64,000 nt of DNA from Octopus bimaculoides (taxonomy: Eukaryota): NCBI RefSeq assembly GCF_001194135.2, contig NC_068989.1, forward strand, positions 29,296,102-29,360,101, given 5' to 3'. This document shows, in pieces, positions 186-64,000 of this stretch. Made by a program: the position numbers and the translations under genes. Below the pieces are notes generated by a model that made no database searches, was not told where the DNA came from, and was given only the letters and a program-made list of their open reading frames with translations. Positions within the stretch are counted from its first letter, which is position 1; each line of letters opens with the position of its first letter.

Positions 186-219
186 ACTCACCACACAGCA
201 ACATGCAACAGGAACTTAC

Positions 220-269
<50 letters not shown>
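186..269 (-). promoter_or_regulatory. Candidate recursive splice site (- strand): T48-AG|GTAAGT, 28-nt cryptic exon, second donor GTGAGT
   Basis: The minus strand reads T48 A G|GTAAGTTCCTGTTGCATGTTGCTGTGTG|GTGAGT. The acceptor AG is at 221-220, the first donor at 219-214 and the second donor at 191-186. Confidence 0.4.
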
Positions 270-2905: not shown

Positions 2906-3149
2906 ATTCCATTTGTTTATCTATGTATTGTATTATACTTTGTTCCTATTATTGTTTCATGGGTAACTTAAGGAAGGGAAGAACTCATCAGTTCTGTACC
3001 AGCACGCTGAGNNNNNNNNNNNNNNNNNNNNNNNNNNNNNNNNNNNNNNNNNNNNNNNNNNNNNNNNNNNNNNNNNNNNNNNNNNNNNNNNNNNNNNNNN
3101 NNNNNNNNNNNATATATATATATATGTATATATATATTTACTAATGCTA

Positions 3150-16260: not shown

Positions 16261-17292
16261 ATGACAAAGTTCATAGTATCGGCCAAAAACAAAAGCAAAG
16301 TAGTTGAAAGTTATTGCATCTATGATTTCCATTCAAGCAATACAAAACTAGGAAAAGTATATTGACGATGTGAGAAAAGAAGGCTGTGTTCAGTGTGAAT
16401 TCACACAGTAATGGAAAACAATGAGCCGAAAATTCTTAATTTTTCTAATGAGCACCTTCATCCAGCTGATGTAGATTCGTTAAATGCTAGAAAAACAGTT
16501 GCAGGAATAAAGCATGAAGTAGTGAAAAACATAGCAGCAAGTTTGTGTAGCATAATAGCGGTTAAGTTTATGCAGCTAACAGAAAATACTTGCTCTCAAC
16601 TTCCTCGTTTGCCTGTACTTTCAAGGACTATTCAAAGGTGCTGACAAAAAAATTCTGAATTTCCCGCTAATCCAGGGGCTAGAACTGTTTTGATATACCT
16701 AAAGAATATTGTAAACTTGATAATGGTGAACAGTTTATGAGATATGATTTGGGTATCGAGGATCACCAGCGCATAGTAGTATTAACATCAGAAAGTGCTC
16801 TTCAGGATATAACATCAAATCGTCATTGGGCATGTGATGGAATTTTCAAAATTGTGCCAGAACAGTGGTTTTTAACTGTTTAGCATTTATGTACAAGTTA
16901 AAGGTAGCAGTTTTCCATGGGTCTTTGCATTACTGCCGAATAAAACAAAGCAGTCGTATGGATTATTTTTCGAGCAATTGAAAATTATGCAACCTAATGC
17001 AAATCCACTTGATCTCATGGCAGATTTCGAAGTTACAGTTCACATGGCATTCCTGAATTCATCTACCATGGCATGTTTGTTTCATTTGAGCCTATCAGTA
17101 TTTCAAAAAATTACAGATTTAGGCCTCAAAAAAAAAAAATGCAATAAAGACTCTGAATTCTGGAATGTTAATCAGCGTATTCTGCAAAATCTTCCCAGAA
17201 CAAATAATGCTGTGGAATGGTTTCATTCAGCGATAAGGCATTCAGTGGGTGGAGCACATTTGAATATTTGGAAATTAATCAAAACTCTATAG
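16261..17292 (+). mobile_element. Mutator-like (MULE) transposase pseudogene with FLYWCH-type N-terminus
   Basis: MTKFIVS..KVY*RCEKRRLC..NEHLHPAD..; HWACDGIFKIVPEQW..LLPNKTKQSY..MADFEV..ACLFHL..RTNNAVEWFH. Contains stops and frameshifts; TIRs not found. Confidence 0.87.
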
Positions 17293-17294
17293 CA

Positions 17295-17720
17295 AGACAT
17301 CTGTTTCTGCCTCTCTGTTTAGCTGTCACATTCCAACCTTTCATTGTCTGACAAGATCACCTCCTCTAATGCCTCCCCCCCCGTCTCTAAATTCCTTGTC
17401 TTGCAAGTTACTTGGTGACCCTGTCATTGCTGGTGTCATGTAAAAAGCATTCAGTTCACACTGTGAAGTGGTTGGCATTTGGAAGAACATCCAGCTGTAA
17501 AAAAACATACCGAAACTGACTTCGCCTGTGTTGGTGTCACATAAAAAGCACTCGGTCCACTCTGTAGGGTGGTTGGTGTTAGGAAGGGTATCCAGTTGTA
17601 AAATACTATACCAAAACAGATACAGTTGCTTGGTTTAGTCTTCTAACTGCTGGCTCCTGTCAAACTGTCCAACTCATGCCAGCATGGAAGGCGGATATTA
17701 AATGATGATGATAATGATAT
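17295..17720 (+). mobile_element. RTE 3'UTR copy truncating the MULE
   Basis: Repeated gtgtcac.taaaaagca units, gtggttggtgttaggaagggtatccagttgtaaaa, and a gatgatgat tail. Confidence 0.82.
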
Positions 17721-18763
17721 GATGGAATGATAGATGCTAATAGTTGTCTAGTGATCTAATGTAAATCATAGGCAGCAGATCATGTCCGACAATGACTCAA
17801 TGATTCAATTTCTTAATGATTATTTTCCACCAGCTTGTGAAATAATTTTATTTATAATGATGGAGCTGTTGCATAACATTTCTTTACTCTTCTCTAAGGC
17901 TTAACTGCCAGGCTAAGATAGAAGACAGAGTCCCTGCAAAAGATAAAGGATTCGGGGTAATAAAAGATGTAGCTGCTGAAAGAAAAAAGAAATAAGATAA
18001 GATAAAATTAAAAAAACACAATGGAAATGGTGAAGTATAAAGAAAATAATGTTAAATAATTAAAATGATTATTTATCATTTCTACAGCTACAGAAATTGT
18101 GTGAGACAATAAATCAAAATAAAAGTGATCTAAATAAAGGTGTTCATTATTTGTTTAATGTCCATTTTTTCTTGCTAGTATGGCTTGGATGGGAATTGAT
18201 TTTGAGGCAAGATTTTACAGCTAAATGCTCTTCTTGTTGCCTACACTCACCTGTTTTTCAAGTAAGAGATTTTCATATTCAACAGGTCTTCACAAGCGCA
18301 GACCAAGCAGTCATAATGTCAACTAGGAATATCAGCATCAACACCACTTCACTCAAATGTGAAATCTCAACATTCATGCACATTTACAAACATACAATCA
18401 CAGATATGTACACACATTTACGCCCCCCTCCCCCCAAGATGGGCTTAGTATGTTTTCTGTCTGTCAAATTCTCTCACAAAGCAATGGTGAACCCAAGACA
18501 ATACTAAAAGACTTTAGCTCTAGGTGTAATGCAGAGAGATTGAACATGTGGTTATAAAGGGAATTCCTTAACCACACAACCATGACTGTCAAGGGATACA
18601 TTTTGTTCTTTCAACAGATATCTAAATGAAAATGTTTTCTTTAAATCTTTGAATTTTATAAAAACATTTAAATAAATTAAAATTAAAATTTGTTTCTTGT
18701 ATTCAGACAAAATATTTCCTGCTTTTTTTTAATGTCTAAATGTTGAAATGTATGAGACCATTT

Positions 18764-18861
18764 GCTTAATTTCTCTCATTCCTGTTTGTTTCAGGTAAGT
18801 TCGAATAATTGTTCGCCTGAAAATTATATTCAGTTCAATTTTTATGAAATATTCGGTAAGT
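18764..18861 (+). promoter_or_regulatory. Candidate recursive splice site (ratchet point) with 61-nt cryptic exon
   Basis: Branch-like CTTAAT, tract ttctctcattcctgtttgttt, CAG(18792-18794)|GTAAGT(18795-18800), exon 18795-18855, second donor CG|GTAAGT (18856-18861). Confidence 0.62.
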
Positions 18862-18999
18862 AATTAGTTTATTAAGATTAGAAAGCTTAATGAATTTTGT
18901 AGCTGTAAAAATGATAAAAATAATCACTGTGGCACTAGCAGCTGCAACAGCAGTAGTAGCTGCACATCTTCTCATAAAACAGGCATTGAAAAAACCCCT

Positions 19000-20950
19000 T
19001 AGGTAATTGAAAGGCCAGCATTGGAAGAAGTATAAAAGGAATAAAGTGGAGTCCAGATCTAATATCACTTCTCAAAGAGAAGAGAGGAAATATCACTTAA
19101 GCATATCTCCAAAAGGCTCCAATTGCAGCAGTATTCCATACCAGGGCAAACTACTGCAAGAAAGTCCCAAAACAATAACAAACAGCTTATCAAAAATAGG
19201 TACAGAAATGACAAAATCAGCAACCACACTAACAACAGGGAGCACAAACAACAAAATTACCAAATGAAACTAGAAAACATCCAGGATCATGCTACCTACT
19301 AGAAGTGCCTCTGGAGGAAAACATGAGATTATCTGACATGACATGGGGAGTGTGATTGACATTATTGGCTTCAAATATGGAAGGCAGGAGGTCCAAATGC
19401 TTTAGCTGTAAGAACATGAACCACTTAAGGATTTTCTGCCATCAGGTGAAGGAGAAGAATAAATGCACACCCCACTTATTGCCAGCTTCTGTAAACTGAA
19501 AGTGGAAGCAATGATGGTAACAACAACAACAACAAATGTAATAATGATTTGAGTTCATCAGTGACAGTCACACTAGTGTTCACCTCTGATCAAAAAGATA
19601 TCAATGACTACCCCACCCCAGTGACTACAATACAAAAATATACAAACACAAACCATGCATCTCAACACAGAAATATGCATGAACGTACTGTAGCCCTTCT
19701 TCATCACTGACTTCTGTCTCTTTGATACTCCATCAAATAATTATCAAATGAACTGTATGGTAAACAACATGATGGCAAGGCAAAGAAGAGGGAGAGGAAA
19801 ACAGTTGTGCAATATTAATGGCCAGAAGGTTTGATGACACAAACCACCAACCATTCACTTACCACCACCATCAGAAACAACAATAACAAAACCCACAGTC
19901 ATAGAAATATAGTTAATCACAGGAAAGCTCATAAAAATTACAACCACTGTGAAACCAACAAAAGAAAGAGGAACACAACAACAAAAATAACAATTGGGAA
20001 GCACACAAAACACAAACCACCACCACAGTGAAATCATCAAAAGAAACCACAACTGCAAAAGCAACACTAACAGCCAATACACAACAACCCCTCTTCCACA
20101 ATTTCACTGCTTTGAAAAAGCGACACGAAAGAGCTGGAATTCATAAAACAACTCACTGATAAAACACAAATAAAAGATGAAAGATTTCCTGTACACAGTT
20201 GTGTTTCTTTTTAACAAACAATGAGATATATGCATCTTGATCAGCCCAGTTTGGGCAGAGTGATGTTTTGGAAAGATCTGGATCTTTAGGTGGAGACAAT
20301 CTTCTTGGTAAATTGGTCCTGCATGTAATCATCAGTGAAGGTGGGCCCTTCAGACTAGTAGCGATTTTCCTCCAAATGAAGTAAGGAGTCTTAGACTTAT
20401 TAAGGCATCAAGCATCATTTTTGAAAACATCATGGTCAGTAGTGCTAGTGAGTGACTGAAATAGCATTCATTATAGATGAATGCTGAAATTGTACAGAAA
20501 TACTTATAAGCGGGAGTTTAAAAACCTAAATTTGCTAAGTTAGTTTCAACTGTCTGATAGGAACCATCATTTGAATTTGGACAGATTGCACCAGTTCATC
20601 TAAATCATCTTGTTAGAGTATTAAATCATTCAGCAGACATAGCATATGGTGTCTACACTTTTCACTTGTTAAGTACATGAACACAAGTCTGTGATGTGTC
20701 CAGTGAATTAATGGACACTCTGGTTACTGGAAGCTGGATGCATTGCTCTAGGTTTGGAAAGCTACAACAATTAAATTACCAAATTAATTAAGCCAAAGAT
20801 GATGGGAAGATGATCATCAAAAACTGGTGGAAGGTTTCTCTGAAGAGAACCAATGTAGATTAGTGCAGGGACTACTTAGCAGAGTAGAAATGGCAGTTAG
20901 AAAAGATATTGTGATGGACAACTAGTGATGAAGATGATGCTTGAACATTT
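19000..20950 (+). mobile_element. Degraded L1/Tx1-like LINE (ORF1 zinc knuckle and ORF2 APE)
   Basis: EGRRSKCFSCKNMNHLRDF (decayed CCHC knuckle) at ~19378-19440, then a Thr/Lys/Asn-rich stretch, then GKLVLHVIISEGGPFRLVAIF (~20308-20370) and GHSGYWKLDALL (~20713-20748). Confidence 0.72.
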
Positions 20951-44956: not shown

Positions 44957-45147
44957 TTTATAAAGTACATAAGGTTAAGTTATAAATATAAAAACTCATA
45001 TATATGCATACTTTTATATATACATAAATATGCATAAATATATAAATACATCAATACATATATGTACATACATAAATGTCTATATATGCACACAAATGAA
45101 TCAATTATTATTATTATTAGATGCATTATATTATATAAATTTACTTG

Positions 45148-45495
45148 AGGGATCAGAGTTCTTCAAACGGACAACGTTTCACAGTGAAAAGCAACTCCAC
45201 ATGCTTCGGAGAACCTGATATATGCACTAACCTGCTCTGGGTGTCAAGGGCAATACATCGGCCAAACACAAAGCAGTCTACGTAAAAGGATGGCTCTGCA
45301 CAGAACCCAGATCAAAATTCCCCAAAACTGAAAAATAGCATTCAGCCAACACATCAACATTTGCACCAATAACAAAAATTCAAGCTTCAGATTTTTTCCC
45401 CTCTACCAATTCAGGGACGATACAAGCTGTAGCCAATGAATTAGTAAAGAGACTCTCTTTATTACAAAATATAGATCCCTTTTGAACACATCTAC
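45148..45495 (+). mobile_element. Penelope-like element, GIY-YIG endonuclease 3' fragment
   Basis: TCASENLIYALTCSGCQGQYIGQTQSSLRKRMALHRTQIK..QHINIC..KETLFITKYRSLLN; contains stops. It is followed by a ~240-bp tandem duplication (45520-45930). Confidence 0.88.
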
Positions 45496-46609
45496 AACAA
45501 ACGACATACCCACCATAGCCTTAGAATAACACAAACACACACGAAAATATTAAAAATGATACACTCAAGAGATTCCCATGAATTCATTAAAAAACAGTCC
45601 CAATCACTGCTATTATCCATAACGAGCCACTTTTAGGTCACTTGACCATTTAAAATCCTACTACTATCATACCCTCTACATTCCTTCTTATTCTCCCTTC
45701 TCTTTCTCCTTTGTCTTCTTCCTCTCCGCCACGTCCTTCCTAACTTTACCACTATTGCTGTTTAGAATAACACCTATGCAAATTTTATAAACAAAACATT
45801 CAAAAGAGATGTCTCAAGAATTCAATCACTACTACCATCCACAACAAATCACTTTCAGGGCACTTGACCATTTAACATCCTACTACTATCATGGCACTCT
45901 CGCATTCTCTTCCTCCTTCTCCTTCTTCCCTGCCAAGAATTCACAATGACCTTGAAACCACAAGAGTAAACAAGAGAGACAGAGACAGGCAGAAACAAGA
46001 AAAATGCCCCTTGTATTTGAATACTATGCAAATATTCTTTTAAAAATTTTTCTTTTACAGAGATGTACTTGCATAGCAAGTGACCGGATCTGAGATCGTA
46101 TGCTGGAATGAAAACAATTGCAGCGTGGAAGGTGTTTATANNNNNNNNNNNNNNNNNNNNNNNNNNNNNNNNNNNNNNNNNNNNNNNNNNNNNNNNNNNN
46201 NNNNNNNNNNNNNNNNNNNNNNNNNNNNNNNNNNNNNNNNTATATATATATATATATATACATATGTACATGTATATACACATATATGCGTTTACAAATT
46301 TGTGTTGCAAGATTCCTTATGTGAAGTCATGTGTTGAAATAGATATTGTTGTATTTCATAATAGTTTAAAAAAAAAAAATAAACATAGGTACTGTATATT
46401 CATTCTTCACTCTTTCATCACTGTTCTGATTCCAGTGCCTGGAAATCTTTAGTCACATATTTGTGACCTCCTCAGCAACACTTTCCATCTTTGTGTGTGC
46501 TCTTGCTGTTCTTCCATTCTGTTCTTCTATGATGTATATCTTTATATGCGCATACTTGTGTGTGTGTACATGCATGTGTGTGTGTGTGTGTGTCATTGTT
46601 CTTGGTAAC

Positions 46610-47020
46610 AAGTCACACAGCTGCAAGAGAGGCAAGCCCTGTTCCTTGTGTATCAACATGAGTCAAGCCAATTTCATCAGGAATCATAACAGAAATGTTA
46701 TGATTTATATGGAAGGTGGGATATGCAGAGATTCCCATTTGGTGTTTACAACAGAATGCTCCAAACACAACTTTATTTATGTTGGTTGTACAGCAGAACA
46801 GTTAAACAAAAGATTCAGTGGGCACAGATATGATGTCAGGCACAATAACAGTAGTTCGACAGAACATGCCCAACATTTTACATCAGATGGCTGCAATTTT
46901 GAAAAGATTTGAAAGTGCATAAAATATTCTGAATCTGCTACTTTTTCAGTCCTCAAAATGCATGAGGAGAAATATATTTGTGAGTTATTAACACCACGTC
47001 CTGAAAGAATGTACAAATGA
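46610..47020 (+). mobile_element. Penelope-like GIY-YIG endonuclease fragment (different family)
   Basis: CKRGKPCSLCINM..GGICRDSHLVFTTECSKHNFIYVGCTAEQLNKRFSGHRYDV..HAQHF..LLTPRP. Confidence 0.85.
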
Positions 47021-51454: not shown

Positions 51455-52402
51455 CAGGGGTTCCCAACCTTTTTTCACTGTAGACCACCAAAATAAGTAA
51501 TTTTTTCCTGTTGACCACCTCAAATTTTAAATTTATTATTAAAGAACTGTTACTCATAAATATTAGTATCATTTTCACTTTGCAATGAAAGTTCCTTTTT
51601 CGTTCTTGTAAGGGACATCACAGAGAACAAATAACTGAGAACACCAATAGCAAAACCAATTTGCAAATGCACATGATTCTCAAGAAAGCTTTATTTGATA
51701 GAATCAAATTGAAAAGGTTACTGAGTCATGGAAAACACCCACTTTTATTCAGTAAAAAAGCTGTACAGTTAAAATATAACAATGTGAAGGGTAAATTTAA
51801 AAAATGTGAGGAGTGAAGTTGGGATCAGTACAAAAGGTCGTGTAAATGTTTTGAGGGAATATAACATTGAATTAACTTAAAAATGTCAGCAACAAGTCGT
51901 TGGGGAAAATGTCAAGAAACCTTCAGTAAAATCCTTGGGCTTGCTTTTTGTCCACAAGCTGAGAAATCCTTGGCTCTTTTTGGCTCAAGTGAATTCTCAA
52001 ATCAGCATTGTTATCAGGGTTCAAATGCTTCCACTGCTTCATGAATGAGTGGAGGACAAGGGAAAATCCCTTTTCAGCCAAGTAGGATGTCGGGAGATTT
52101 ATAATAAAAGGCTTGACCTGTTCAAACAACTTTGGATATTCATGAGAATGATTCAACCAAGCCTCAACCCAGTTGTTTTCAGACGATTTGTGCAGATTAT
52201 CATCTACCGTTGCCTCACATAGCTCCATCTGAACGCATTCTGGTTGAACAAGTATATCATTCATAGACATTGTGTGAAGAAAGACAACAAAAGTTGGGAT
52301 ATTTAAAGCCAAAAGATATTCAAAGCGAATATTGAAGTTTTCGTGAAGGAAAGATAGATGCCCAATTATATATTTGTGCAAGTTGTTATCTACCACATCC
52401 AA
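51455..52402 (-). mobile_element. hAT (Buster/Charlie-like) transposon 3' remnant
   Basis: Terminus CAGGGGTTCCCAACC at 51455. ORF 51923-52402 ends ..YPKLFEQVKPFIINLPTSYLAEKGFS..DLRIHLSQKEPRISQLVDKKQAQ. The other terminus was not found. Confidence 0.85.
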
Positions 52403-54151: not shown

Positions 54152-54590
54152 TTCTTTTACTTGTTTCCGTCATTTGACTGTGGCCGTGCTGGAGCACCGC
54201 CTTAAAGGATTTTAGTTGAAGAAATTGATCCCAGGACTTATTCTTTGTAAGCCTGGTAATTATTCTATTGGTCTTTTTTTGCCAAACTGCTAAGTTACAG
54301 GAGGATATAAACACACCAACGTCAGTTGTGAAGCGATGATGGTGGGGAGACAAACACAGATCAAAGACACACACACATAAATATCTACATACATACATAC
54401 ATATATTTATATATCTATAAATATATATATATGATAGGCTTCTTTCAGTTTCTGTTTACCAAATCCACCCACGAGGCTTTGGTCAGTCTAAGGCTATAGT
54501 AGAAGACACTTGCCCAAGGTGCCACATAGTGGGACTGAACCCAGAACCATGTGGTTGGTAAGCAAGCTTCTTACCATGCAGTCCTGCCTA
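54152..54590 (-). mobile_element. tRNA-type SINE family B
   Basis: Reverse complement of the 59729-60180 element along its full length. Confidence 0.92.
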
Positions 54591-55426: not shown

Positions 55427-55939
55427 NNNNNNNNNNNNNNNNNNNNNNNNNNNNNNNNNNNNNNNNNNNNNNNNNNNNNNNNNNNNNNNNNNNNNNNNNN
55501 NNNNNNNNNNNNNNNNNNNNNNNNNNNNNNNNNNNNNNNNNNNNNNNNNNNNNNNNNNNNNNNNNNNNNNNNNNNNNNNNNNNNNNNNNNNNNNNNNNNN
55601 NNNNNNNNNNNNNNNNNNNNNNNNNNNNNNNNNNNNNNNNNNNNNNNNNNNNNNNNNNNNNNNNNNNNNNNNNNNNNNNNNNNNNNNNNNNNNNNNNNNN
55701 NNNNNNNNNNNNNNNNNNNNNNNNNNNNNNNNNNNNNNNNNNNNNNNNNNNNNNNNNNNNNNNNNNNNNNNNNNNNNNNNNNNNNNNNNNNNNNNNNNNN
55801 NNNNNNNNNNNNNNNNNNNNNNNNNNNNNNNNNNNNNNNNNNNNNNNNNNNNNNNNNNNNNNNNNNNNNNNNNNNNNNNNNNNNNNNNNNNNNNNNNNNN
55901 NNNNNNNNNNNNNNNNNNNNNNNNNNNNNNNNNNNNNNN
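55427..55939. other. Assembly gap; other gaps at 3012-3111, 42888-42897, 46141-46240, 47470-47508
   Basis: Runs of N, several bordered by (TA)n. Confidence 0.99.
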
Positions 55940-56705: not shown

Positions 56706-57441
56706 CATATATCTATAAATAATTATTTAAGTGAGGAAAAGAGAAGTCAAATGAATGTTATGAACATTTCCATAAATGAATATTGTTTATTCCATACCTT
56801 ATTTAAAGTTATGCAATATATGCAAAACCATCATGTTCATTCACTTCCTAAGACATTCTGAGTTGAAACACAATCGATTTATGAAATGAATCTGCAAGCA
56901 GGTTACATCTATATAACTTCATGGGTATGTCAATAGCGTACAAATAAACCAAATGTATATATTCTATTATCAACAAACTGACTAGCAGACAAGCGAATAA
57001 TGGAAATAAATAAATGAAAAAATACCAATATGATAGAGAAAGATTTTGATATCTCTTCTTTTTATTTATTATTGAGATGTTTTCATTTTACTCCAGATTC
57101 TTTTGACGATAGCACATTCCAAAGATTTTCTTATACTTTTCTTTTTTAAATTCAATTGGCCATTTCTGTTAAAATGAACTGTTTTCTATCTTTCTTGTAG
57201 TTTCTTAGATGTATTTCACCAAACACCTTGACAATTTTCTCATTTTCTCATCACTAAATAACTGTTTTCAACATGTGAAGAATATTGTATTGCTGCTCAC
57301 AAACATTCACATATATACACATTCACATATATACACTTTCACACAGACTCAGGTATTATTCTTAGTTTCAACTTGGTGAAATATTGCCATCATATTCATT
57401 TATAAGTCAATGGAGATGAAATATCTTTTTCTATTGTACAG

Positions 57442-57603
57442 CACTCTTTTCAAGAAGGAGATGGAGCCCCACTATGGAACGGAGAGTTTTGCAGTCATAT
57501 CTTACACTTCCTCCCCATCGCCATTTAGAACCCAATCGATATGGAAATCTGGTGGCTACAGTTGTTCCTATCCAGCGGAATACGGCCACAAATTCATCAA
57601 CAG
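57442..57603 (+). CDS. Probable host-gene exon (162 nt), product unidentified
   Basis: Acceptor atatctttttctattgtacag, donor CAG|gtgaat, length 3n, and a GC/CpG-richer island in AT-rich flanks. Two frames are open; the favoured one is (x)LFSRRRWSPTMERRVLQSYLTLPPHRHLEPNRYGNLVATVVPIQRNTATNSST. Confidence 0.72.
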
Positions 57604-57955
57604 GTGAATTCCATAACCTCCATTCTACATGCACAAACATTTAAGCAGTCATGCTAGTTTCTTTTTCTATCTTGTGCTAAGTGTCTTTATTTTGTGTCTT
57701 ATTGTGTTTTTGTGGAATTCTGTTTATTTTAGGTGTTGTTTAACTCCTTACCATCCAAATGTCAATGCTTATCCTTTGAAAATTTAAGTTGCTTCATGAA
57801 TGTAAAGAAAATTTATTCAAATATTCCTTTTGTTTTTATATATACAAATATGCATACATACGCACATGCACATGTGTGTACATGTATTTCTTGTACATAT
57901 CCAAAGAGGAGATCATTTTGTGAATGTATATATATTTATATATATATATATATAT

Positions 57956-60852: not shown

Positions 60853-61449
60853 CTACTTTTTAAAATATTTAAAAGTGCAAGTGGAACAGTGTACACACAA
60901 TACTCTAAGGTCTAATCTCTTATTAATCAGGTTAGAATTATTTCTAAGTTTAAAAATTTCATATGTTTCCATGGAACATAGTTCACATCCATATCTGCTA
61001 TTTCTATAAGGTTGGGCTTTTCTTGTAATTTCCCTTTTAAGGCTAAAACTAATACCACATTCCTTTAATTCCCAAATTTTATTTGAAAGCAATGTACAAT
61101 TAGCCTTATGTTTAAGTCTAAAAGATGACAGGTGGTTATATATACGCTGTTTCAAATTAATCGTACATCCCAAGTAAATATCATTATCAGTTATAGTACT
61201 TATTGTGCATTTATATACTACATTTCTGGTGAAACATTGGCCTAATAACGGACAACGGGACTTATTTCTACAATTGCAACTAGTGGAATTATCAACAACA
61301 CCAATATCATTACTAAGATTTAAATTATTGTTGTTACAATTATTCGCATTGATATTATTTCCCCTATTATTTATTCTGTTATCAGGCTTATTATGATCAC
61401 TTCTATTACTATCTAACTCCATTTCCATCGTGCTATCAGATAGAATCAT
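60853..61449 (-). mobile_element. Penelope-like GIY-YIG endonuclease, uninterrupted ORF, no RT attached
   Basis: An Asn-rich linker, then CNCRNKSRCPLLGQCFTRNVVYKC..IYLGCTINLKQRIYNHLSSF..LSNKIWELK..CELCSMETYEI..LINKRLDLRVLCVHC; open to the stop at 60853. Confidence 0.88.
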
Positions 61450-61459
61450 TCCCACCCCT

Positions 61460-62489: not shown

Positions 62490-64000
62490 CAGACATCTTG
62501 CTCTGGCTTGTCTCTGGGTAATGTCAATAAAGTGGAGAGAGCCTATGAGGTGTTGTGCAATCCTTATAGGACCTAAAACTCTGCACAGGAATTGCCGACC
62601 TCTGTTCGATATGTGCAATTTTTTTTTCATCCTATAAATATTTATCTTATTTTTATGTCTTTCCATATCTGGTCAGTTTAGTGCAACTGATGGATGTCCA
62701 CCCTGCGCTCGAAAAACAAAGAGTCTTTTATTTATAAAATCTGGACGGAACTTAAACATTTCATGTTGGAATGTGCGCACTCTGTTGGACAACAAGAGTG
62801 ATTGTAGGCCTGAAAGACACACTGCACTTGTTACGCGTGAGCTGAACCGTTATAACATTGATATAGCTGCACTCTCAGAGACTCATATAGAAGATGATGG
62901 TCAGCTTGAGGAAGTAGCAAGTGGATACACCTTTTTTTGGAAAGGAACACAGAAGGAGGAGCGCAGAGAGGCTGGTGTTGGTTTTGCAGTCCGATCTGAT
63001 ATCCTTAAGAAGTTGGAAGAGCTCCCTGTTCCTATAAATGAACGTATAATGACTCTGCGGTTGCACTTGAAAGGTAGGCAGTTTGCTACTCTAATAAGTG
63101 CTTATGCACCTACTTCGACTAGCTGTGATGAAGATAAAACAATCTTTTATACCCAGCTGAGAGCCATACTTAGAAAAATCCCCAATTCTGATAAAGTCAT
63201 TCTACTGGGGGATTTTAATGCCAGAGTTGGAACAGACTGGCAAACATGGAACTCTCTAGGACGTTTTGGAGTAGGGAAAATGAATAGCTATTGTCTCATG
63301 CTACTGGAGCTTTGTGAAGAACATGGACTTTACATCGCAAGCACTCATTTTATGCACAAAGGTGATCACACAACAACGTGGATGCATCCAAGGTCCAAAG
63401 TTTTGCACTTGCTAGATTATGTCATCATCCACAAGCGCAAGATCTATGACATTTGTAATGTCAAGTCCTTTCATGGATTGGAATGCTGGACAGACCACAG
63501 TCTGGTGCGAGCAAAGTTCTGAATGACGATTAGAGTGAAAGAGAGAAGAGGACCAGTCAGCATTCCTTGGCATCTAAATGTCCACAAGGTATATGATATT
63601 GTGGTTAGGAAAGAGCTTCAGACTCGCTTGTCCAGCATTGAAAATACTGCAGCATGGGAAAATTTTCAAGACCAGGTTCTTCAATGTGCAGCCGAAATAC
63701 TGGGATATGTTACTGCCAGACACAGAGACTGGTTTGATGAAAATGATGCTGAAGTTCAGCGACTATTGGTGGTAAAGTGCCATGCCCACAGTGTATTGCT
63801 ACACAGAGAACTGTCTACTGTGCAGCGAAGTCTAGCACTTGCCCACTATAGCAGTGTAGAATCACTACTGCAGCAATCTCTCAGGAAGATGCAGAACACT
63901 TGGTGGGAGGATCTTGCTCGTTATGTTCAGGCTGCTGCTAATGCAAATGACAGCAAGAAGCTTTACCATCTTATGAAGTGAGCTTATGGACCTAAGAGCT
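62490..64000 (+). mobile_element. RTE-BovB-like LINE, 5' part (APE domain), runs off the window
   Basis: SCWNVRTLLDN..RPERHTALVTRELNRYNIDIAALSET..SGYTFFWKG..GVGFAV..ISAYAPT..LLGDFNARVG..TWMHPRSKVLHLLDYV..WTDHSLV; stops at ~63520 and ~63979. Confidence 0.93.

Follow-up and report, generated by a model that had tools for sequence, protein, structure and literature searches.

A window of 64,000 nucleotides of Octopus bimaculoides DNA, by which we mean the whole stretch analysed here, carries on its plus strand a complete recursive-splice-site architecture at 18764-18861. We give about an even chance to the reading we prefer, that this site is a look-alike, a 61-nt pseudo-exon that arose without selection and has no maintained function. 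It would then be a pseudo-exon whose first six bases form a consensus donor, set in non-coding DNA that is rich in transposons and depleted of CpG. What we observe are the motifs, how rare they are and the lack of further copies in the window; everything about their use we infer.

Read directly, the plus strand at this site runs gCTTAAT-TTCTCTCATTCCTGTTTGTTT-CAG/GTAAGT...(61 nt)...TTCG/GTAAGT, where a slash marks a putative splice junction (Table 1). A second branch candidate, CTCAT, is found at 18775-18779, and no AG occurs between the TTAAT branch candidate and 18793. Positions -4, -5 and -6 of the tract are T and position -3 is C, the candidate junction is 18794/18795, and the donor matches U1 at 9/9 positions. 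On the plus strand of the window YAGGTAAGT is present only at 18792-18800. The segment that follows is open in frame 1 (VSSNNCSPENYIQFNFYEIF) and has stops in frames 2 and 3. Both donors read GTAAGT; in the second, position -1 is G and position +7 is A, while the strength of the first depends on the upstream exon. The initial annotation had described the branch-like motif, the tract, CAG/GTAAGT and the second donor accurately to the base, and the length of 61 nt, the 3n+1 phase and the second perfect donor that it reported are borne out, with the donor GT at 18856. We looked for a tandem duplication as the origin of both donors and found none, so that the two donors are independent. A reading of GTTCGAAT as the B box of a tRNA-derived SINE was rejected, there being no tRNA, Rfam family or A box, and the RNA structure around the site is not unusual (z = 0.1). 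An exact 30-mer across the site has 0 matches in metagenome contigs.

Table 1. Positions, in window coordinates, of the candidate site and of the features discussed with it.
Feature	Position	Strand	Remarks
Control look-alike	186-269	-	T48 (222-269), AG (221-220), GTAAGT (219-214), GTGAGT (191-186)
Inverted-repeat left arm	18066-18123	.	outer ~33 nt ~90% complementary to right arm
Branch-point-like TTAAT	18766-18770	+	fits yUnAy; A at 18769, 25 nt upstream of AG
Pyrimidine tract	18770-18791	+	19/22 Y; 17/20 in scored window
CAG/GTAAGT, putative ratchet point	18792-18800	+	AG 18793-18794 abuts consensus donor 18795-18800
61-nt putative RS-exon or pseudo-exon	18795-18855	+	GC 26%; 3 CpGs; 3n+1
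Second consensus donor TCG/GTAAGTA	18856-18861	+	would define 61-nt segment as exon
Inverted-repeat right arm	18868-18926	.	begins 6 nt past second donor
Exon-like island	57442-57603	+	162 nt (not 163), GC 0.47, 5 CpGs; possible next exon, same strand

Such an anatomy is the first argument for a different reading, which we consider unlikely, namely that 18795 is a genuine, selected ratchet point followed by a cryptic 61-nt RS-exon in the giant intron of a plus-strand gene. When the sequence definition of a ratchet point taken from Duff et al. (a tract followed by CAG/GTAAGT) is applied, the site has 17 pyrimidines in 20 and T at -4 to -6; when that of an RS-exon is applied (a downstream donor, a short length of about 50 nt and an out-of-frame phase; PMC8605326), a segment of 61 nt is found. 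Every sequence criterion for recursive sites in flies and vertebrates has its counterpart here. The 3n+1 length together with stops in two of the three frames is what one would look for in a cryptic RS-exon whose skipping is required. Against our preferred reading it must likewise be counted that the strict architecture is rare, that all its elements are at consensus (TT at -5/-6, C at -3, U1 9/9, branch A at -25), that the two donors did not arise by duplication, and that 61 nt resembles the roughly 50-nt, out-of-frame cryptic RS-exons of flies.

How much weight this rarity can bear depends on the expected number of chance copies. GTAAGT occurs nine times on the plus strand and ten times on the minus strand, and AGGTAAGT once and twice, respectively. 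As a null model we used an order-4 Markov chain trained on the window, with 1500 simulated windows. The expected rates per 64-kb strand are 0.95 for AGGTAAGT alone, 0.05 when at least 15 of 20 tract positions must be pyrimidines and 0.0047 when at least 17 of 20 must be; requiring also a second GTRAGT within 20-200 nt gives 0.0027 (at least 15) and 0.0007 (at least 17). A semi-empirical product of the window's own frequencies places the strict form at about 1e-4 to 3e-4, so that overall the chance rate per 64-kb strand is about 1e-4 to 7e-4 for the strict and about 0.003 for the loose form. The composite is well beyond chance for one window, which favours a selected site; the candidate was, however, picked after inspection of the sequence, so this single-window rarity is post hoc. 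Chance alone should place about 10-60 copies of the strict form and hundreds of the loose one in a genome of 2-3 Gb, repeat-derived copies excluded, and such a load, tens to hundreds where the genome measures a few Gb, is in keeping with a look-alike. Neither of the component associations is enriched in the window, as our preferred reading would have it: AG precedes GTAAGT three times against about 1.9 expected, and pyrimidine tracts precede AGGT on the plus strand 18 times against about 16 expected.

Pairs of a good acceptor and a good donor 25-250 nt apart, which we term loose pseudo-exons, number five on the plus strand and four on the minus strand. In this spacing and in its deep intronic or non-coding position the candidate resembles pseudo-exons and poison exons known from long genes (such as the DMD pseudoexons, PMC7175933). 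Pseudo-exons do not normally start with a consensus donor, whereas two of the nine pairs in the window begin with GTAAGT, one being the plus-strand candidate and the other a composite on the minus strand near the start of the window.

This minus-strand composite, which serves as our control, has a 28-nt segment (219-192) between its donors and falls under the loose definition. Its T48 is the antisense of a pure A48 run on the plus strand (222-269), the sole long homopolymer or A run in the window. The A48 run is preceded by ...GGAACTTACCT. It may be the tail of a retroposon or a mononucleotide microsatellite. In Alu-type exonisation the antisense poly(A) of a retroposon tail supplies the pyrimidine tract, and the minus-strand composite, in which the T48 antisense of A48 is followed by AG, fits this pattern. 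The plus-strand candidate differs in that its tract is a mixture of C and T and not a homopolymer, and in that no recognisable retroposon body adjoins it. Should A48 prove to be a retroposon family's tail, a ready-made acceptor and donor would come with each antisense copy of that family in an intron.

With one composite on the plus strand and one on the minus strand, the window shows no sense-over-antisense excess of the composite, a weak test at n = 2. The two cannot both be sense sites of one gene, and therefore at least half of the window's look-alikes are not what the motif suggests. The minus-strand composite also implies that the real rate of look-alikes in the genome exceeds the Markov estimate, and, being complete and on the opposite strand, that the motif alone fixes neither strand nor function. 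That the same 64 kb holds an equally good composite on its other strand, derived from the antisense of A48, argues for the look-alike and against a selected ratchet point.

The surroundings of the site are rich in decayed mobile elements, and we also weighed the very improbable reading that the site belongs to an old dispersed repeat, for instance as the interior of an 861-bp element with inverted arms or as the 3' region of the decayed MULE-type transposon just upstream. The candidate does sit inside an 861-bp unit bounded by inverted arms, and the arms are significant (a 22-mer with up to 3 mismatches gives 2 matches against 0.02 expected; E about 2e-4), with the second donor ending just 6 nt before the right arm. 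Remnants of a MULE-type transposase lie just upstream at 16876-17289 (+), SINE remnants are found nearby at 17428-17620, 18154-18264 and 18505-18590, and the minus-strand composite demonstrates that the edge of a long A/T run can supply the motif. With such an origin the splice-like motifs would simply have been passed on as part of the repeat. However, the window holds no second copy of 18600-18930, and no target-site duplication was seen flanking the arms. Arms that lack such a duplication and enclose unrelated SINE pieces make a clean MITE unlikely. The possibility that the upstream SINE runs through the site was rejected as well, since the homology of the remnant at 18505-18590, which aligns with a SINE at 54500, stops at about 18595, some 170 nt short of the site. 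The initial annotation had placed the site in a non-repeat island; it is right in that no other copy exists in the window, and the description holds only in part in that inverted-repeat arms enclose the site. Transcribed from either strand, these arms could pair as a long-range duplex.

Elsewhere the window contains remnants of LINE endonuclease and reverse transcriptase on both strands, a GIY-YIG-type ORF and the MULE-type transposase remnant. The last of these belongs to frameshifted ORFs at 16399-17289 (+), the remnant itself spanning 16876-17289, with a Pfam MULE match at E = 2.7e-4, below the curated cut-off. At 62773-63981 (+) an ORF of 249 aa for a LINE endonuclease directly precedes one of 152 aa, from which a single stop separates it, and this suggests that the copy is young. 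In protein searches the best identity of the endonuclease ORF is 61% (ENA contigs), and its named matches come from shrimp, sea urchin and amphioxus. ORFs resembling the GIY-YIG endonuclease module of Penelope-like retroelements are found at 60853-61455 (-), 46463-46912 (+) and about 45140-45320 (+); only the first has a Pfam match, a weak one (E = 4.7e-4), and the other two were assigned by eye. A 159-aa ORF at 51923-52402 (-) looks by eye like the C-terminal dimerisation region of a hAT-type transposase, and Pfam gives no match for it at E<=0.01. The window contains 762 N, in runs (3012-3111, 46141-46240, 55427-55939 and others) that are flanked by (TA)n/(TATATA)n microsatellites, which indicates that the draft assembly is gapped at simple repeats.

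Whether there is a plus-strand gene to host the candidate turns on an exon-like island 38.6 kb downstream. The window's sole non-transposon GC/CpG island spans 57435-57629, and within it 57442-57603 has the acceptor ttgtacag/ and the donor CAG/gtgaat, has two open plus-strand frames and is not repeated in the window; since the GT of the donor starts at 57604, its length is 162 nt and not 163. No further exon-like island is present in 1-57441 or in the rest of the window. To judge from its sequence, the island is probably a plus-strand exon. The peptides of its frames 2 and 3 have 0 homologues in a word-indexed search of 5.8 billion proteins, and an exhaustive HMMER search of 1.84 billion representatives with the frame-2 peptide returned no consistent homologue; three weak matches, to RTX-repeat, Fn2-repeat and DUF proteins, are mutually inconsistent and were rejected as noise. 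Searches of the island against Pfam, the PDB and metagenome contigs (tblastn) were empty, and exact-ORF look-ups in the contig index gave no record of it, four ORFs of the window being absent there. Since even the best relative of the LINE ORF is only 61% identical, a missing exon homologue is weakly informative. The island may be either a coding exon specific to its lineage or an exon that does not code for protein. The claim that it is the only clear exon therefore stands as regards an exon-like island with splice sites, the only non-transposon one in the window, and falls short as regards homology.

For the candidate this context cuts both ways. The site shares its strand with the sole non-transposon exon-like island, and with no other such island in 1-57441 its intron would measure 57 kb or more, a size at which recursive sites are usual in flies; these points favour a selected site and tell against a look-alike. 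The absence of a homologue for the exon-like island of the putative host gene points the other way on both counts. We put the chance that 18795 lies inside a plus-strand intron at about one half.

The 61-nt segment is distinguished from its surroundings by its CpGs. These are at 18802, 18814 and 18854, all in TTCG, and three of the five CpGs in 18000-19600 fall inside the segment. Among AT-rich 61-nt windows only 0.4% hold at least three CpGs, and by that measure there are six such loci in the window, the candidate included; of the other five, the MULE-type transposase remnant holds one, another lies where the LINE ORF starts, and a third has the look of a SINE 5' end. The initial annotation's remark that three CpGs are retained in CpG-poor DNA thus describes a real cluster, the observed/expected CpG ratio of the window being 0.27. 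The cluster hints at constraint or at youth. It stands against a look-alike and has been counted here in favour of a selected ratchet point, although the bodies of fly cryptic RS-exons show little conservation, so that recursion does not specifically predict CpG retention. The GC content of the segment, at 26%, is similar to that of the surrounding non-coding DNA, as our preferred reading would lead one to expect.

Retention of CpGs along the whole segment fits the constraint on an exon better than a cryptic exon that is skipped, and it is one of the observations in favour of a reading that we hold to be quite improbable, a 61-nt exon of the ordinary, expressed sort (cassette, poison or coding), which starts with GTAAGT, uses the donor at 18856 and is included in some mRNAs at least. 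In vertebrates an exon that begins with a regenerated donor and is included is called an expressed RS-exon. The segment's acceptor and donor are both strong, with 61 nt between them, and its frame 1, when joined to 57442-57603, stays open through frame 3 of the island. Moreover, among annotated mammalian exons there are thousands in which a donor is regenerated in the same manner, as stated in PMC8605326 and PMC6224609. On the other side, its GC content of 26% compares with 47% in the exon-like island, an open frame of 20 codons in one of three frames is unremarkable, and the frame-3 peptide of the island, which it would join, is itself without a homologue.

Ratchet points with cryptic RS-exons have reportedly been found in the Drosophila genes Ubx, kuz, Bx and luna (Hatton 1998, Burnette 2005, Duff 2015, Joseph 2018/2021, Pai 2018), and vertebrate recursive splice sites and RS-exons are said to have been described by Sibley 2015 and Blazquez 2018. 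In flies, recursive sites are present in the majority of introns longer than 40 kb. Fly ratchet points consist of a tandem acceptor and donor with long pyrimidine tracts and conserved cores, lie in the longest introns, and have TT at -5/-6 in 196 of 197 cases (bioRxiv 10.1101/006163). The cryptic RS-exons of flies are about 50 nt long, poorly conserved and usually out of frame, and their donor loses to the regenerated donor of the ratchet point (PMC8605326). At fly kuz and Bx, destroying the ratchet donor reportedly switches splicing towards inclusion of the RS-exon. The octopus candidate is like these sites in its pyrimidine tract, its TT at -5/-6 and its CAG/GTAAGT, in having a short out-of-frame segment closed by a donor of its own, and presumably in lying in an intron well above 40 kb. 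It differs in coming from another phylum, and in that junction reads, saw-tooth coverage, lariats and an ultraconserved core define the Drosophila sites, whereas the candidate is known from sequence alone. In Drosophila, furthermore, the ratchet donor is usually stronger than that of the RS-exon, whereas here both are GTAAGT; because the second donor matches the first in strength, it is not clear that the ratchet donor would win here as it does in flies, which weakens the case for a selected site.

In vertebrates, according to PMC6224609, the RS-exon is defined first and then re-spliced. The candidate could work in a similar way, by exon definition followed by use of the regenerated 5' splice site, and a strong RS-exon donor would be compatible with it. 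Vertebrates also resemble the octopus in having large, repeat-rich genomes with giant introns. In mammals, however, only nine fully suppressed intronic sites have been definitively noted, against thousands of expressed RS-exons (PMC8605326). So few suppressed sites mean that a motif match alone is of low predictive value in genomes of this kind, an argument in favour of the look-alike. Searches of the literature for recursive splicing together with octopus yielded no paper, and those with mollusc and cephalopod terms yielded incidental co-mentions only, in agreement with the initial annotation, whose author knew of no description in molluscs. The lack of any report from the phylum is a further point against a selected site.

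If a plus-strand pre-mRNA does run through the site, our preferred reading still leaves it a way of being spliced, by analogy with the fly and vertebrate mechanism. The tract and CAG, together with the donor at 18856, would define the 61 nt as an exon, and the upstream exon would be joined to 18795. The regenerated GTAAGT would then compete with the donor at 18856, and the 61 nt would either be removed again, with no trace left in the mRNA, or be included with a shift of frame. Were the site instead a selected ratchet point, the upstream exon would be joined to 18795, GTAAGT would then remove the next 38.6 kb or so up to the acceptor at 57441/57442, and the 61 nt would be discarded. Some recursive use that would be detectable in RNA is a possible outcome, if a somewhat unlikely one, because a strong acceptor with a strong donor 61 nt further on in a transcribed intron would be a plausible substrate even when it is not under selection.

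For work on genomes of this kind the window carries a caution, as a transposon-rich genome has here produced a complete match to the ratchet-point motif on the wrong strand within the same 64 kb. Before sites are called from motif scans in such genomes, the scans must therefore be backed by sense/antisense controls, repeat masking, conservation and RNA evidence. It is distinctly unlikely that the candidate is a genuine, conserved and constitutively used ratchet point, the first to be documented in a mollusc or lophotrochozoan. Should it prove real, it would add a recursive site of the standard kind from a further phylum, extending a known mechanism in an expected way and not revealing a new one, and it would provide a concrete locus for RT-PCR and minigene work. 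Recursive splicing would then reach a third major lineage of animals, whose genes are very large and rich in repeats. The stepwise removal of giant introns by way of cryptic RS-exons would in that case be common to insects, vertebrates and cephalopods, and this sharing would be either ancestral to bilaterians or the result of repeated recruitment as introns grew.
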